Below, piece after piece: positions 47,117 through 60,144 of a stretch of 64,000 nt of DNA. The stretch is from the NCBI GenBank assembly GCA_021613535.1, contig CP075497.1, forward strand, positions 10,788,001 to 10,852,000, in the 5' to 3' direction. The stretch comes from Adineta vaga. Its lineage: Eukaryota > Animalia > Rotifera. Position numbers and translations under genes: made by a program. The notes below the pieces were generated by a model that was not told where the DNA came from, ran no database searches, and saw nothing but the letters and a program-made list of their open reading frames with translations. The first letter of the stretch is position 1; each line of letters starts with the position of its first letter.

Positions 47117-48202
47117 ATGGGAGGTGGTAGTTCACGTCGTCGAAAACCAAATACACCTATTCCATCTTATGCGCCAGGTTTAGGAGGATCACCAGGTATT
47201 AGTCGACCAGGAAATTCAGTTGTTACTGGTGTTGGAAATCCAACGGGAATTAATCCTAATCAGCAACGAGACTTAATGCAAGCTCAACAAACAATTGCAA
47301 ATTTAACTAATCAACTAAATGCTTATCAACGTAATGCAAGTGGTGGTATGCCTATACAACAAATGCCTTATGGGAATTATTCAGGACCTAGTGGCACACC
47401 ACCGATGATGCCTTATGGTACTCCGCCACAAATGGGCTATGGAACACCACCGATGATGCCCTATGGTAGTCCATCATATGCACCTCCAAGTCCGACTCTT
47501 CAACATTTTGCTGGACAAAATCCGTATCCATATCCATATCCATCACCACCAATGCCACGTGCTAATGGTTATCGTGATACTGACTTTGCGGCTATTGCTA
47601 ACATATCTGGTTTAAATCCAGGTGATGTCGCACTTCTTCATCGAGAATATATGAATTTAACACGTGGTGGTATAAATAAAATTGATCGTGTCATTTTTCG
47701 TCAAATACTACGAGATGTTCTTCTTGAAGCTAATAATGAACATGTCGATCGTGCTATTGAAAATATGTTCGTTACAATCGATCGAAATCGTGATGGTTTT
47801 ATTGATTTTCCTGAATTTATTGGTGCATTTAAAGATGTTTTAAAAGGAAATGTTTCTGATGCTCCAAATTATTTTCAAGATGATGTTTATCCTGATATCT
47901 TAGGAAGTCAATTACGAGCAGCTGGTGTCGGTAGTGGTGTTGCATCTCAATCTGTAGCACGCATTCAACAAGCAGCACCAGCTCAACAATTTGTTACTAC
48001 AGGTGGACTTAATATTGTACCATTAGCATCGACAGCAATTCAACAAACACCACTTATTTGTAGTCCTGCACAAATTTCTGATGCATCAGCACCTGTACTT
48101 ACTCTTGATCCAAATCAATCATCTTACGTAATTGCAACACCAGGCCAATATTTGATCACACAACCAACAGCTTTACAATGTGTACCATTACCTATGATGT
48201 GA
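47117..48202 (+). CDS. Intronless EF-hand protein with N-myristoylation motif and Pro/Gly/Tyr/Met-rich region
   Basis: 361-aa open ORF. MGGGSSRRRK N-terminus and a canonical EF loop DRNRDGFIDFPE within a recoverin/NCS-like N-lobe. Confidence 0.8.
   Translation: MGGGSSRRRKPNTPIPSYAPGLGGSPGISRPGNSVVTGVGNPTGINPNQQRDLMQAQQTIANLTNQLNAYQRNASGGMPIQQMPYGNYSGPSGTPPMMPYGTPPQMGYGTPPMMPYGSPSYAPPSPTLQHFAGQNPYPYPYPSPPMPRANGYRDTDFAAIANISGLNPGDVALLHREYMNLTRGGINKIDRVIFRQILRDVLLEANNEHVDRAIENMFVTIDRNRDGFIDFPEFIGAFKDVLKGNVSDAPNYFQDDVYPDILGSQLRAAGVGSGVASQSVARIQQAAPAQQFVTTGGLNIVPLASTAIQQTPLICSPAQISDASAPVLTLDPNQSSYVIATPGQYLITQPTALQCVPLPMM
47393..47479 (+). repeat. Coding tandem 24-nt repeat (GTPPMMPY / GTPPQMGY / GTPPMMPY / GSPSY)
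   Basis: Visible in both DNA (acaccaccgatgatgcc occurs twice) and protein. Confidence 0.85.
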
Positions 48203-52601: not shown

Positions 52602-53080
52602 TGTTTATCTTTCTTTAAAATTAAAACTGATCACGATTGCACTAGCATATAAAATCATTATATAAGTTTGTGATCTTGTCAGCAGGTATGCGTTGAAAAG
52701 AATTTAATTGAGTGTGATAAGACAAGAAAACAACGCCACAGCTTGATGTTATTATGTTCTGTACATATACGTGTATATCTTCGAGATAATTGAAAGAGAT
52801 AATTTCGACGAGGAGGGATAATATTGAACTAGGATGTTTCAATTATCTTTTTTGTTCGAACAATCAATAATCAAATATAGACTTTGGATAGATTGAGTAA
52901 TAATAATAATACTAATAATCGAATTAGATAGAAGAGGTTTGTTATGTATATTGATTGTTTGAGGAAGAGGAGGAGAAAAGAAAAGAGCGTGAAAGAAAGA
53001 AATTTAGTCATTCATTCTTTAATTCAGAGTTCGAACAGGTGTCATATCTGAATCCATCGAGTGACTATCAGGGATAAAGC

Positions 53081-54306
53081 ATGACTTCGATTAGTAATTT
53101 GTAAGTTCATTTCTTAACTATGATGTTTTAATGAGTCATTATTTTCTTATTGAAGGTTTATCTTTATCTGTTTATTGATTACTTTTATTTGTCAACCATC
53201 ATTTTCTCAGGCACCATGCCCAATTGAAGAAGATCCCATACAATTAGCTGAATGTGCTCAACTTGATGTACAAGCAATTATACAAGGAGCTCGGGGAAAT
53301 TTGAAATTATTTTGTAATCTAGCTGAACGATATATGGAATGTTTTAAAACGAAAACAAGAAATTGTATCGGTGGATGGGTAAACTAAGTGTTATTTTTAT
53401 ACGAGCAGTAAATTAAGATTATAGTTTTGATTTAGGCAGCAGAAGGTGGTTTGACTGAATTACAAAATCTAGCTCAATGGTGTTGTGTCAATCCAGGTGT
53501 TCAAGAACCTGACGAATGTCCACTTCGTCGTAAGTATAATAAAAGAAATTTTCATCATTCATTTCATTTTGTATTCAAAGGAAATCCAAAATGTTTTTCA
53601 AGTAATGATTATGTATCGATGGCAAATGGTGACAAAAAAGTTTTACATGATCTTCAACCAGGTGATCGTGTTCTAGCGATGAATTCAGAACAACAAATTG
53701 TGGAAGATGAAGTTATTATGATACTTGATAGTCAACCAAAACGACCTGGTAGAAATTTATACATTTTAGTTCTTGTTTTATTTTATCTTCTTCTTTCAGC
53801 TCTGTTTTATTCGATCGAAACTATCACTGGCCATCGAATTAGTTTAACAGGAAGTCATTTTATTGCTGTTGAACATAACGATCGTTTTATTGCAGCAAAT
53901 AAGATTCAACCCAATGATATTGTTTTTATTCATCAAAATGGGCAACTTCAACAAATTACTGTTCGAAATATTACTGAAGAATACAAAGTCGGATATGTTA
54001 CACCAATGACTGGTCACGGTAATTGATAATATCTTTTGGTTTATACTATATTCATCTATTTGTCTATAAATAGGTACATTGATTGTAAATGGTATGGCTG
54101 CATCGTGTTATTCTAGTGTAATTAGTCATGATTTAGCGCATTACATCTTAGCACCACTTCGTTGGTGGTATCATTTAGCGAAATTTTTCTCAGTTGAACA
54201 ACCATTTGAATACTCATCTGATAATGGCATTCATTGGATACCTAAAGTAATGTTACAACTTACAGAAAAATACCTACCAAATGTTTTAACAACACACAGT
54301 TTGTAA
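53081..54306 (+). CDS. Secreted Hedgehog-related Hog-domain (Hint + sterol-recognition region) protein with an unrecognised 8-Cys N-terminal domain; 6 exons
   Basis: Signal peptide MTSISNLFIFICLLITFICQPSFS; K|CFSSNDYV..LQPGDRVLA..VIMILD..ISLTGSHFI..GYVTPMTGHGTLIVNGMAASCYS; SRR-like HDLAHYILAPLRW..GIHW. Confidence 0.88.
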
Positions 54307-55510
54307 TAAACTATCAATAAGAAATGTTCTGAAAGAGACATACATGTCCTTTTCTTTTCTTTCTTTCGTATCAGTACTCAGGTTTATTAAATTTTTTTGA
54401 CTGAACAGGTGTGCTTCTCATTTTATTCTTACCTATTCAAACTTTTTCATACTTATCTCTTTTTTTTAATACATAGACTTTTGAATAAATTAGATTATTG
54501 TTTGATGCTTTAACTATTTTGTCTTTATTGTGAAATAGAATTTACTTATTATGGCAACATTATCTTCTTAGAAAAATATTTGTTTTGAAGAAAGAAAAGC
54601 TTTCTTCCGTTTGAATATTGTACTATTTGACTTTTTCATATTGATTGACTTTTATTATTTGCTTAAATCATTTCGTATGTGTACAACTCATGTCTACATC
54701 TTGAACAACTAACAAATATGCATAATTGAATTTCTTTTCGTTAACTAGAATTATATTCAACTCGATCGATATTCACCAGACAGATTCTCGTCTCCAACCA
54801 GAGATAAGATTACTTGCTGAAAATTTGGATTGTGTGACAATACTGAAGATATTTGAGAAAAATGTATTGTTTCGTGAAATCATACAAGTATCAAGAATCG
54901 ATGAATTCTATTCTGAGATTATACAAATAATCACTTGACTTGGCATGTAACTGAGTTGCCATCAGTGATAGATCGATCGAATCCTCTATCTATGATTAAT
55001 CTTCGTTAAACAATCGAATATTTATCTTTCATACATCAAACTATACCTTACATATGTATTCGTATTTTCATTACTAACTCCAATATAACCGTTGCAAAAT
55101 CATACTATAAACATATGCCTCCAAATCTATGATTAATCAATAAGAAAAAATATATTATGAATTTTTTATATTCCATTATTGTATAGTGGCATATCGATTG
55201 ATTGATTTCTCTTCAAAGATTTCTATGATGGACTTGTATGCAAAAAAACATGAAGTAAAGCTTTGTTTCAGATACCAAAGAAAATCAATAGAGATTTACA
55301 TATGATGTCTTTCTTTGTATCATATGAGTGAAAATAAATACTCCCATGAAAAAAACTTTATTTTTTCCTATGTTTATTATTCTGAAATAAAAAAAAAGAA
55401 CAAGAATAAAGTTAAAGGTTTCATATTTTCTAATTAAAGTACATATATTCGTAAAAGAACTTCATGTTCTATTTGATTTCATTTTAGTTCCGTTCACAAT
55501 CACGTCCAAC

Positions 55511-57757: not shown

Positions 57758-58642
57758 TTATGCAAATATATGATCTTGCTGCGATGTCCATTGATTAGAT
57801 AATTTACTTGCTGTATCATGAATCTTTTGACTATGTTCATTTTTACATTTGTGTTTACATGACTCTGCCGGAATGCCCCATCGAGCTCCAGCAAGAATAC
57901 CAACGATAGGTGCACAATAATAATTCTCTTTAGTTTGAACAGATTCAATAGCATTCATTGGATTTGTTGCATTTGTAACATAGTAGAGTGCAGCATTGAG
58001 TACAGTTGGTGCGTAAGCCGGATGAGTCTTTTCAAATGGTTGCGGAGAACGAGAATATCTTGTTTGTATTTTAGATATGTCAGGTTCAAGACGAGGTAAA
58101 TAAAATGCTGATTGAACAGCATCATGCCATGATTTATTTCTCGATAAAGATCGACAAATATGATTTATAATACCAGCAACTTGTCCCGCTAATGGATGAT
58201 GATGTGTAAGTGCTGCTTCTTCTTTTGATACATCAAACAAATCATCATCACTGATCAAAGGATAGAATGCAAGTGGAAATGAACGTTGTGCTGGTCCACA
58301 TCCAGCTGTATAACCATTAAGTTTGTCGTGAGTAGTCTTTACTGATTCATGAATCATTGATTGATCAAAAAGGAAATCGTCATGTGAAGTTATTGATCGA
58401 CTACTTTCACTCTGTCTTTTATTCAAAGCTATTGTGTATAAAAATTTTGTTGTTTCACCAACTTCACATCGTTGCGTATGATATAAATATAGAAATCTCG
58501 AGAGAATATCAGGTCCATTGAATTTCCTGCAAGTAAGGAGACTTTCACTTATATCCATAGCCATTGAAATAGATGGATCATAATTTGATGCAATTGCATG
58601 ACCGAGAAAAGCTCCTTCACATCGAGTAGGAATGTTGATCAT
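57758..58642 (-). CDS. ADP-ribosylglycohydrolase (ARH/DraG) fold protein with degenerate active site; intronless
   Basis: RCEGAFLGHAI, MAMDISESL, AGCGPAQRSFPL, AALTHHHP, IVGILAGARWG follow the ARH motif order. The likely ATG is at 58642, not the TTG start in the ORF track. Confidence 0.7.
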   Translation of the reverse strand: MINIPTRCEGAFLGHAIASNYDPSISMAMDISESLLTCRKFNGPDILSRFLYLYHTQRCEVGETTKFLYTIALNKRQSESSRSITSHDDFLFDQSMIHESVKTTHDKLNGYTAGCGPAQRSFPLAFYPLISDDDLFDVSKEEAALTHHHPLAGQVAGIINHICRSLSRNKSWHDAVQSAFYLPRLEPDISKIQTRYSRSPQPFEKTHPAYAPTVLNAALYYVTNATNPMNAIESVQTKENYYCAPIVGILAGARWGIPAESCKHKCKNEHSQKIHDTASKLSNQWTSQQDHIFA

Positions 58643-59175
58643 GATTTCGGCGAATTTAAACGTGAAGTAAATCTTTAGATGATGAAGAATCCAGACGACG
58701 ACGGGAAAGTAAATAAGAACAAGAAATAAATAAACTGATGTCAACTTCTTTTTTCTTTTTCAAAGAAAAGGAAAATTATAAGTGTTTTTGCATGACGACA
58801 TGACAAAATAAAACATCATTGGTTTAAAATTTATGCATAGAGGAAACATTTTTCTATGATGTATACATTTTGTGTAAGAAAAACAATACTATACTATAGA
58901 AGATTCAATTCAGACGTATATTGTGAGTAATAGTTACTGAAACTGAATAGAGAACTGCTTTTTGAGATTTTATACGATCTTAAGATATTTGTAAATGCAT
59001 TAGACATTGAAGTATATATATTGAATTATTAAATGTTTAAAGAAGATTATTATATTTAATAAAAAAAATGAATACGAAAAAGAAGAAGAATTAGTATTCT
59101 ACATTGTGAAGTACTACTTTGATACAAAATCCAAGAATAGTATATGAATGTTCATTTTTTTGTATACCGTTTATA

Positions 59176-60144
59176 TTATTGAAGCAGTAAGAAAGTAAAA
59201 ATCATGTAAAAAATACCAAGTGGATATAATCTTGCCGAATTTGGTCCTGAATTTGCTGTTGTTGTTGGTGGATTCGTTGAACTCGAGCTTGAACTTGAGC
59301 CTGTTGAAAAGGTAGTAGTAGTAGTAACTCTAGATGGTCGAAAATCAGAATGTAGATTGATTGTTGTTTGAACTTGTCCTTTTAAAAATTCCACTACTTG
59401 AATTGAATTACAATAATCTTTAGTACATCTAATATCCACTTCATCGATTTCTAATTGTTTTTCTACTGGAAAATCAATATAATATGTTGCACGAATTCGA
59501 ACACTGGGTGATTGAACAGGATCAGTAAATGATTCACAAAGACTATAAAAATGAAATGTGCAATTATTCGCTGCCGTTGTCACATAATTATGTATTTCAT
59601 CAATATAACATATACCATTCGGACATGAGACTTGTTTACATAAAATTGCAGTTAATTCATTGATACATTTACTGCATGAATAACAAGCTTTAGCTGGTAA
59701 TTGTCCATCAAGTAATTCATTGCTCAAGATCGTTTGATTAATATTTATTTGAAATGATTCTGGCAAATAGTTTGCAAGAGAAACATTATTACAACCATCC
59801 CAATCACAACCATAACCAATGGAACTGATTGCTGTTGGAAGCCATACTGTACTTGATAGAGAAATTGTTTCGACTGCTTGAATAAAATGTGAATCTTGCA
59901 GATTATTTGATGTAATCGCTTCAAAGATACGGTTTTCGTAATTATCGTTATAACTACTGATCATAAAACAGTATCGATCACCAACTTCATTCAAAGGACA
60001 ATTTGCGGAGAAATCTGGTGATGAACAAGTACCCGTATTTGTTTCCCAATCATATTCACAACCACATTCATAGCATTTTCGACTATCCACTGGCCAAATT
60101 AGTAACACTAAAATAATGCAGAGCACACCCATAATTCTCTTCAT
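59176..60144 (-). CDS. Predicted GPI-anchored protein with two Ly6/uPAR-like (three-finger) Cys-rich domains; intronless
   Basis: Signal peptide; RKCYEC...GCDWDGCN and KACYSC...RCTKDYCN; Ser/Thr stalk; NSA omega-like site followed by a hydrophobic C-terminal tail. Confidence 0.72.
   Translation of the reverse strand: MKRIMGVLCIILVLLIWPVDSRKCYECGCEYDWETNTGTCSSPDFSANCPLNEVGDRYCFMISSYNDNYENRIFEAITSNNLQDSHFIQAVETISLSSTVWLPTAISSIGYGCDWDGCNNVSLANYLPESFQININQTILSNELLDGQLPAKACYSCSKCINELTAILCKQVSCPNGICYIDEIHNYVTTAANNCTFHFYSLCESFTDPVQSPSVRIRATYYIDFPVEKQLEIDEVDIRCTKDYCNSIQVVEFLKGQVQTTINLHSDFRPSRVTTTTTFSTGSSSSSSSTNPPTTTANSGPNSARLYPLGIFYMIFTFLLLQ

Follow-up and report, generated by a model that had tools for sequence, protein, structure and literature searches.

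The six-exon gene on the plus strand at 53081-54306 of the window, by which we mean the whole stretch of 64,000 nucleotides of Adineta vaga DNA analysed here, is a functional, expressed gene that encodes a secreted Hog precursor of 318 residues (957 coding bases, that is, 318 codons and a stop codon). Behind its predicted signal peptide the precursor carries a cargo domain with eight cysteines (residues ~27-116) and then a Hog domain. We favour, with moderate confidence, the reading that this is a functional Hog precursor, that its cargo becomes tethered by a sterol and that this cargo belongs, as a divergent member with one extra disulfide, to the RGM_N fold. RGM_N is the head, built of three helices stapled by disulfides, with which the repulsive guidance molecules (RGM) bind BMP/GDF.

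All five introns are of the GT..AG type and 51-57 nt long, and all five exon joints are found exactly in spliced transcript contigs, X1-X3 from one study and X5 from a second, so that the splicing proposed in an earlier, sequence-only reading of this DNA was borne out by RNA-seq data. Together the transcript contigs cover 53036 to ~54476. A seemingly different joint, 54019>54076 with a C inserted, reflects this splice together with a T>C change at 54075. The variants at 53219 and 54075 are synonymous, while at 53635 the X1 and X2 contigs have C for A, which changes Lys131 to Thr; the orthologues have Thr at this site. The gene was searched exon by exon, and its colinear orthologue P0001 from Adineta ricciae (318 aa), which aligns without gaps to the exon translations and is 80-100% identical over exons 2-6, was used as a full-length stand-in. 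A pseudogene or an artefact was ruled out by the splicing, the expression and the dN/dS. The layout read earlier, with a signal peptide, an eight-cysteine region and a Hint domain beginning at the Cys codon at 53592, was found in place feature by feature, with a cargo of about 90 residues (Table 1). The N-terminus has a hydrophobic core followed by ..SFSQA|PCP, a typical signal peptide as predicted by inspection of the sequence.

Table 1. Parts of the Hog-cargo gene (window positions), followed by the cargo subfamilies with their loci in the A. vaga genome (contig:position)
Feature	Position	Strand	Basis or members
5' UTR (minimum extent)	53036..53080	+	Transcript contig (run X1) begins at 53036
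Exon 1: start codon (ATG, 53081) and first 6 2/3 signal-peptide codons	53081..53100	+	Gene model; joint 53100>53156 in X1-X3
Exon 2: remaining signal peptide to ~53213, then cargo Cys1-Cys5 from 53214 (P27)	53156..53378	+	Gene model, transcripts, orthologue, alignment A2
Exon 3: cargo helix 3, CC pair (Cys6-7), Cys8	53436..53529	+	Gene model, transcripts, alignment A2, orthologue
Exon 4: linker R-N-P-K, nucleophile Cys117 (53592-53594), Hint block A, Asp162 (53727-53729)	53581..53748	+	Pfam Hint E 9e-12; Drosophila Hh C258, D303 aligned
Exon 5: Hint block B, Thr185 (53847-53849), His188 (53856-53858)	53800..54018	+	Pfam Hint E 5e-10; Drosophila Hh T326/H329 aligned
Exon 6: end of Hint with Cys253 of ASCY (54106-54108), sterol-recognition region, stop codon (54304-54306)	54074..54306	+	Pfam Hint E 4e-12, profile 149-210 of 213; orthologue aligned to Drosophila Hh residue 465 of 471
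3' UTR (approximate)	54307..54476	+	Transcript contigs end at 54467-54476
Subfamily A	C6:10.841M (this gene), C3:5.926M		Gene 53081-54306 and orthologues in Adineta, Rotaria and Didymodactylos
Subfamily B	C2:9.102M, C5:9.588M		For example P0094, P0097
Subfamily C			P0087
Subfamily D			P0058-P0078
Subfamily E	C3:6.887M, C6:9.612M, C6:9.614M		P0091, P0111

Three other open reading frames of the window were looked at in passing. The one at 47117-48202 (+) encodes a Pro-rich EF-hand protein that starts with MGGGS, a possible myristoylation site, and the one at 57761-58744 (-) an ADP-ribosylglycohydrolase (E 4e-16). The third, at 59179-60144 (-), encodes a secreted Cys-rich protein of 322 aa with a Ser/Thr stalk and a hydrophobic tail and has no Pfam match.

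The precursor had been taken for a Hedgehog-type autoprocessing (Hog) protein, and the detailed alignment agrees, as all the catalytic residues and a Hedgehog-like sterol-recognition region (SRR) are present. Exons 4, 5 and 6 each match Pfam Hint (PF01079) separately with 39.7-46.8 bits against a cut-off of 29.7 and together span profile positions 12-210 of 213, and the orthologue P0001 scores 163.7 bits against the same profile and aligns to residues 258-465 of Drosophila Hh with an E of 5e-22 (phmmer). Cys117, Asp162, Thr185/His188 and Cys253 are in register with C258, D303, T326/H329 and C400 of Drosophila Hh, which means that the whole conserved catalytic set (Cys1, Asp46, Thr69-x-x-His72 and Cys143 in Drosophila HhC numbering) is kept. 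The Hog half contains LTGSH, ILD and GTLIVNG..ASCY, as well as the tail HDLAH..APLR..GIHW, and in the sterol-recognition region the alignment to Drosophila Hh runs on through 400-465, including the ..LAH..LAP.R.. and ..NGIHW.. motifs. Cys117 and Cys253 are the only cysteines of the Hog domain. An extra Cys pair is Buerglin's mark of the nematode ARR-type Hog domains (PMC2362128); since this pair is absent and the tail has both SRR motifs, the Hog domain is of the Hh type. The cleavage junction is K|CF with Lys116 at -1, as had been noticed earlier, instead of the G|CF of Hedgehog, and a residue other than Gly is the rule across the cargo-Hog family: position -1 holds K, Q, N, T, K, R or E, with no case of Gly.

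By analogy with the Hedgehog mechanism, the signal peptide would be removed first, the Hog module would perform an N-to-S acyl shift giving a thioester at Lys116-Cys117, and this thioester would be attacked by a sterol that the C-terminal SRR holds in place and Asp162 activates. Residues ~27-116 would be released as a four-disulfide helical bundle with a C-terminal sterol ester, and the ester would keep the cargo tethered to membranes or lipoprotein carriers. The product is most likely a sterol-tethered surface ligand. To our knowledge, covalent cholesterol modification has been established experimentally for Hedgehog only. We find it unlikely that the Hog domain cleaves only, by hydrolysis or by transfer of a non-sterol adduct, and leaves a freely soluble cargo with no lipid anchor. 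Such an outcome would fit with Lys at -1, unlike the Gly of Hedgehog, with the paralogous subfamilies in which His replaces Asp46 as general base or the SCY cysteine is missing, and with the ARR concept, in which the adduct of non-Hedgehog Hog domains in general is not known (PMC2362128). However, in this gene Asp162 is kept, the tail can be aligned with the sterol-recognition region of Drosophila Hh as far as residue 465, both conserved motifs included, and the domain lacks the extra Cys pair that is the criterion for the nematode ARR type (PMC2362128). These points argue for a sterol-tethered product, which remains our preferred reading of the processing.

Purifying selection on the gene is strong, most of all on the cargo. 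In 28 pairs of bdelloid orthologues and ohnologues, identity averages 92.7% for the cargo, 74.5% for the Hint, 67.9% for the SRR and 39% for the signal peptide, and dN/dS between the copies on C6 and C3 is 0.07 for the cargo and 0.23 for the Hog domain. Since its identity is higher and its dN/dS lower than those of the Hog domain, the cargo is the more constrained part of the protein, as in Hedgehog. The stronger constraint on the cargo than on the processing module argues that the functional product is the released, presumably sterol-tagged fragment, and it argues for a specific binding function over a bulk structural role.

The eight cysteines and one proline (Pro11) are the only invariant columns in the alignment of 19 family members (A2). 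With each exon and the cargo of P0001 as queries, Pfam gave no match at E<=10 for the cargo of this gene's subfamily, and an ESM Atlas feature search with the cargo returned no usable match. The earlier view that the N-domain is neither Hedge nor Ground has held, as there was no match at E<=10 to Hedge (PF01085) with the exons and P0001 or to Ground-like (PF04155) with the exons, P0001 and the family members. As an indirect comparison with Wart and Qua, the cargo profile was searched against 1.84 billion representative proteins, and none of its matches was nematode-like. This exhaustive HMMER search yielded 51 proteins at E<=0.001, nearly all of them rotifer-like (names were looked up for 10 of the 51). 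A word-based protein search with the family alignment recovered 49 full-length or partial relatives, and all of those with a named source are bdelloid rotifers.

The family comprises at least five subfamilies (Table 1) and is found in bdelloids and in Seison; in two proteins of Seison nebaliae, of 1038 and 392 residues, the cargo domain stands immediately before a Hog domain. The suggestion of a lineage-specific class is supported, as the family is lineage-restricted, with members in bdelloids and Seison. In the A. vaga genome (100.8 Mb, six contigs) there are at least seven cargo loci, each with a Hint match just downstream, and the paralogues on C2 and C6 are the NCBI Adineta vaga proteins I4U23_008606 and I4U23_030293. 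Paralogues lacking the Hint domain, which the sequence-only reading had considered, were not found in rotifers, as all seven A. vaga copies adjoin a Hint match. Short database matches that could pass for Hog-less genes were rejected, since these prokaryote-style calls read past the end of exon 2 and translate sequence of intron 2.

The 60 exon-level Hint matches in the A. vaga genome group into about 41 Hog loci. Scanned in all six frames, the whole genome gave no match to Hedge (PF01085) at E<=0.01. A. vaga may lack a bona fide Hedgehog and yet have a nematode-like expansion of Hog genes. The best-scoring Hog domains of the genome (C2:8144748 and C5:10371728) follow EGF-like N-termini. Some Hog domains of the cargo family differ in their active site. 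In the subfamily B paralogues (C2:9101217-9104360 and the C5 locus; P0097, P0094) His takes the place of the general base Asp46 (..LHYE..), with Gln at -1. The Asp-to-His swap leaves Drosophila HhC active. In subfamily C (P0087; a transcript contig of Logan ERR15133524) the Hog domain starts with C-I-D and not C-F, and the SCY cysteine is absent (LLSNY); judging by these residues, it may process differently or not at all. A contig of 6571 nt from Logan SRR8185553 carries two adjacent, divergently oriented Hog genes between a myosin gene and a homeobox gene, one with a subfamily D cargo and the other with an N-terminal ORF of 116 aa that has no assigned family.

Searches of the literature found no paper describing rotifer Hog genes and none linking RGM to Hog. 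As such, the combination of a Hog domain with a Cys-rich cargo particular to one lineage is well known, both from the nematode families (PMC2362128) and from Lophohog (PMC5103448, PMC9695228). The rotifer cargo-Hog family is therefore one for which no description was found in the papers searched, and a Hog domain with an alternative cargo is a known kind of architecture.

The sequence-only reading had left the N-domain unrecognised, whereas the profile, fold (Foldseek) and Pfam evidence converges on a remote RGM_N-like helical bundle. Against 177,635 distinct PDB sequences, the seven best matches of the A2 profile are all N-domain chains of human RGMA, RGMB and RGMC (best E 0.0012). Two disjoint sub-profiles made from halves of the family (A4 and A5) each place RGMA and RGMB first, with E values of 0.11 and 0.013. 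Outside rotifers the first cargo profile matched a single protein, from Haliotis, which contains six-Cys repeats in tandem (E 1e-5); adding the Haliotis repeats to the A2 profile brings RGMA to an E of 7.5e-4, and a single Haliotis repeat searched against the PDB finds RGM chains only (E 0.009). In the alignment of A2 to RGM, Pro11 and Cys2, Cys3, Cys4, Cys5 and Cys6 are aligned, and outside the cysteines there are matches at F before Cys3, at Y three residues before Cys4 and at G two residues after Cys5. Pfam RGM_N (PF06535), with matches in three of the 19 members at E 0.01-0.02, is the one Pfam family to exceed two members; the best score of 16.5 bits lies below the cut-off of 24.2, and there is no match for this gene's own subfamily.

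A first AF2 model from a narrow alignment (A1) was poor (pLDDT 60.6) and was replaced by one made from A2, which is a helical bundle (pLDDT 74.1, pTM 0.59) with helices at 22-29, 33-51 and 57-74. In this model Cys3 and Cys4 lie in helix 2 and Cys6 at the end of helix 3, and Cys5-x-Gly falls in the helix 2-3 linker, which matches the register of RGMB, whose N-domain is a three-helix bundle with three disulfides and an RGD/RGN loop in the helix 2-3 linker (PMC7354924). Foldseek against the PDB returned RGM N-domains at all of ranks 1-9 (E ~0.9, none of them significant), and in an ESM Atlas search an RGMA-like cluster stood in the second row. Taken together, we regard a remote homology of the cargo to RGM_N as probable, not proven.

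It is possible, but clearly less likely, that the cargo is a rotifer-specific Cys-stapled helical domain unrelated to RGM_N, with a convergent C-x8-C-x7-C spacing and a role in the apical extracellular matrix or integument, the processing by the Hog domain being the same. The RGM scores are all marginal and driven by cysteines: in HMMER they amount to 16-23 bits and rest largely on the five aligned Cys together with F, Y and G. Generic helical bundles also score equally well or better when structures alone are aligned. With VIA-align against PDB structures, RGMB reached a Z of 3.9 over 59-60 residues and stood below the MIT domains (Z 4.9), so that the fold is that of a generic small helical bundle, and a wide structure-only search gave generic helical bundles only (Z<=5.8) and was uninformative. 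The lack of a Pfam match for this subfamily fits a convergent origin as well, and an integument role would be in line with the Hh-related proteins of C. elegans, described as cuticle and pre-cuticle components (PMC10793445). Against convergence, the four profile variants and the single mollusc repeat rank RGM first of the 177,635 sequences, many of which are Cys-rich, and Foldseek and Pfam name RGM_N independently. The conserved F, Y and G positions outside the cysteines align too, and the secondary structure, as modelled, has the register of RGMB. Hence a kinship with RGM_N is still the reading we prefer for the cargo.

Since the match lies below the Pfam cut-off, the cargo protein is, as far as its sequence tells, not a member of the RGM family itself. 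The A. vaga genome has a gene at C2:8447431-8451090 with RGM_C above the Pfam cut-off (match at C2:8448931-8449590). It was considered as a bridge between the cargo and RGM and rejected, as its N-terminus matches neither the cargo profile (hhalign probability 1.8%) nor Pfam RGM_N. Its upstream ORFs do carry C-x8-C-x7-C, and since they have no match to Pfam RGM_N, the N-domain of this rotifer RGM is highly divergent too.

As for a possible partner of the cargo, Gly101, Leu103 and His106 of RGMB are essential for the binding of BMP2 and GDF5 (PMC7354924), and in the A2-PDB alignment these residues correspond to G, W and E in this gene. Binding of BMP by the cargo is therefore not supported, as Leu103 and His106 are not kept, and with only the Gly remaining of the three contacts the partner of the cargo need not be BMP. 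It is a speculative and rather improbable scenario that rotifers tether an RGM_N-derived module by Hedgehog-type cholesterolysis and not by GPI, and that this module acts as a co-receptor or trap for a ligand of the TGF-beta/BMP family or another cystine-knot ligand. If it were true, evolution would have joined one ligand-binding fold to two self-cleaving and lipid-anchoring devices that are unrelated to each other, and there would be a second, non-Hedgehog class of sterol-modified signalling proteins in animals. If the kinship with RGM_N holds, it would give a first hint on the type of partner bound by such cargos. In addition, a compact precursor of 318 residues that combines an Hh-type SRR with a non-Hedge cargo makes it testable whether Hog domains outside Hedgehog attach sterols.

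A. vaga seems to resemble C. elegans in having many Hog genes but lacking a Hedge domain. As in the nematode warthog, groundhog and quahog genes, there are many Hog genes with alternative Cys-rich secreted N-domains in a genome with no Hedge-domain match. In contrast to the nematode Hh-related proteins, the rotifer cargo has no Ground-like match, its profile finds no nematode protein, its Hog domain, with the SRR motifs and without the extra Cys pair, belongs to the Hh type and not to the ARR type, and in rotifers the cargo was not found apart from a Hog domain.

Lophohog, a Hog domain joined to a unique N-domain in Lottia, Acanthochitona and Capitella (PMC9695228, PMC5103448), is likewise a spiralian Hog protein with an N-terminal domain of its own; its accessions are XP_009065705, XP_009066517, XP_009067386 and ELU16390 (PMC5103448 supplement). 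Indirect profile and word searches detected no similarity to it. Rotifers are spiralians and the mollusc Haliotis has related Hog-less repeats, which would suit a cargo belonging to the Lophohog N-domain family and make this gene a rotifer Lophohog. We consider this very unlikely, as no match assignable to Lottia or Capitella was obtained at E<=0.001 among the 1.84 billion representatives (10 of the 51 matches being looked up by name), and word-based searches returned rotifers only with the family alignment and Haliotis only with the Haliotis protein.

The nearest relatives of the cargo outside rotifers are the Haliotis repeat proteins P0080, P0089 and P0125 (E 1e-5), which are also RGM_N-like by sequence but differ in having three to five tandem six-Cys repeats with Thr-rich linkers, a hydrophobic C-terminus and no Hog domain. 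They come from Haliotis rufescens, H. cracherodii and H. asinina, and the names under which they are annotated, 'platelet binding protein GspB-like' or 'nucleoporin NSP1-like', look like misannotations.

With Hedgehog (Drosophila Hh, vertebrate SHH) the rotifer protein shares the order of (predicted) signal peptide, cargo and Hog domain. Its catalytic set of Cys nucleophile, Asp46, T-x-x-H and SCY cysteine is that of Hedgehog, its SRR has the two conserved motifs as well, and in both proteins the cargo is better conserved than the processing half. They differ in that the rotifer cargo is, according to the model, an all-helical four-disulfide bundle of ~90 residues and not Hedge, and in that Lys and not Gly is found at -1. 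With the N-domains of RGMA, RGMB and RGMC the cargo has in common the Cys3-x8-Cys4-x7-Cys5 core, the Pro-x5-Cys start and the nature of a small secreted helical bundle; both have a Gly in the linker that joins helices 2 and 3, and in both helix 3 ends with a Cys. It has eight cysteines instead of six, and the place of RGM_C/vWD, the GDPH site and the GPI signal, all of which are absent, is taken by the Hog module, as everything after the cargo is Hint and SRR. In both systems the N-domain precedes a self-cleaving module; in RGM it ends up anchored by a lipid, GPI, and in the rotifer protein it would be anchored by a sterol.
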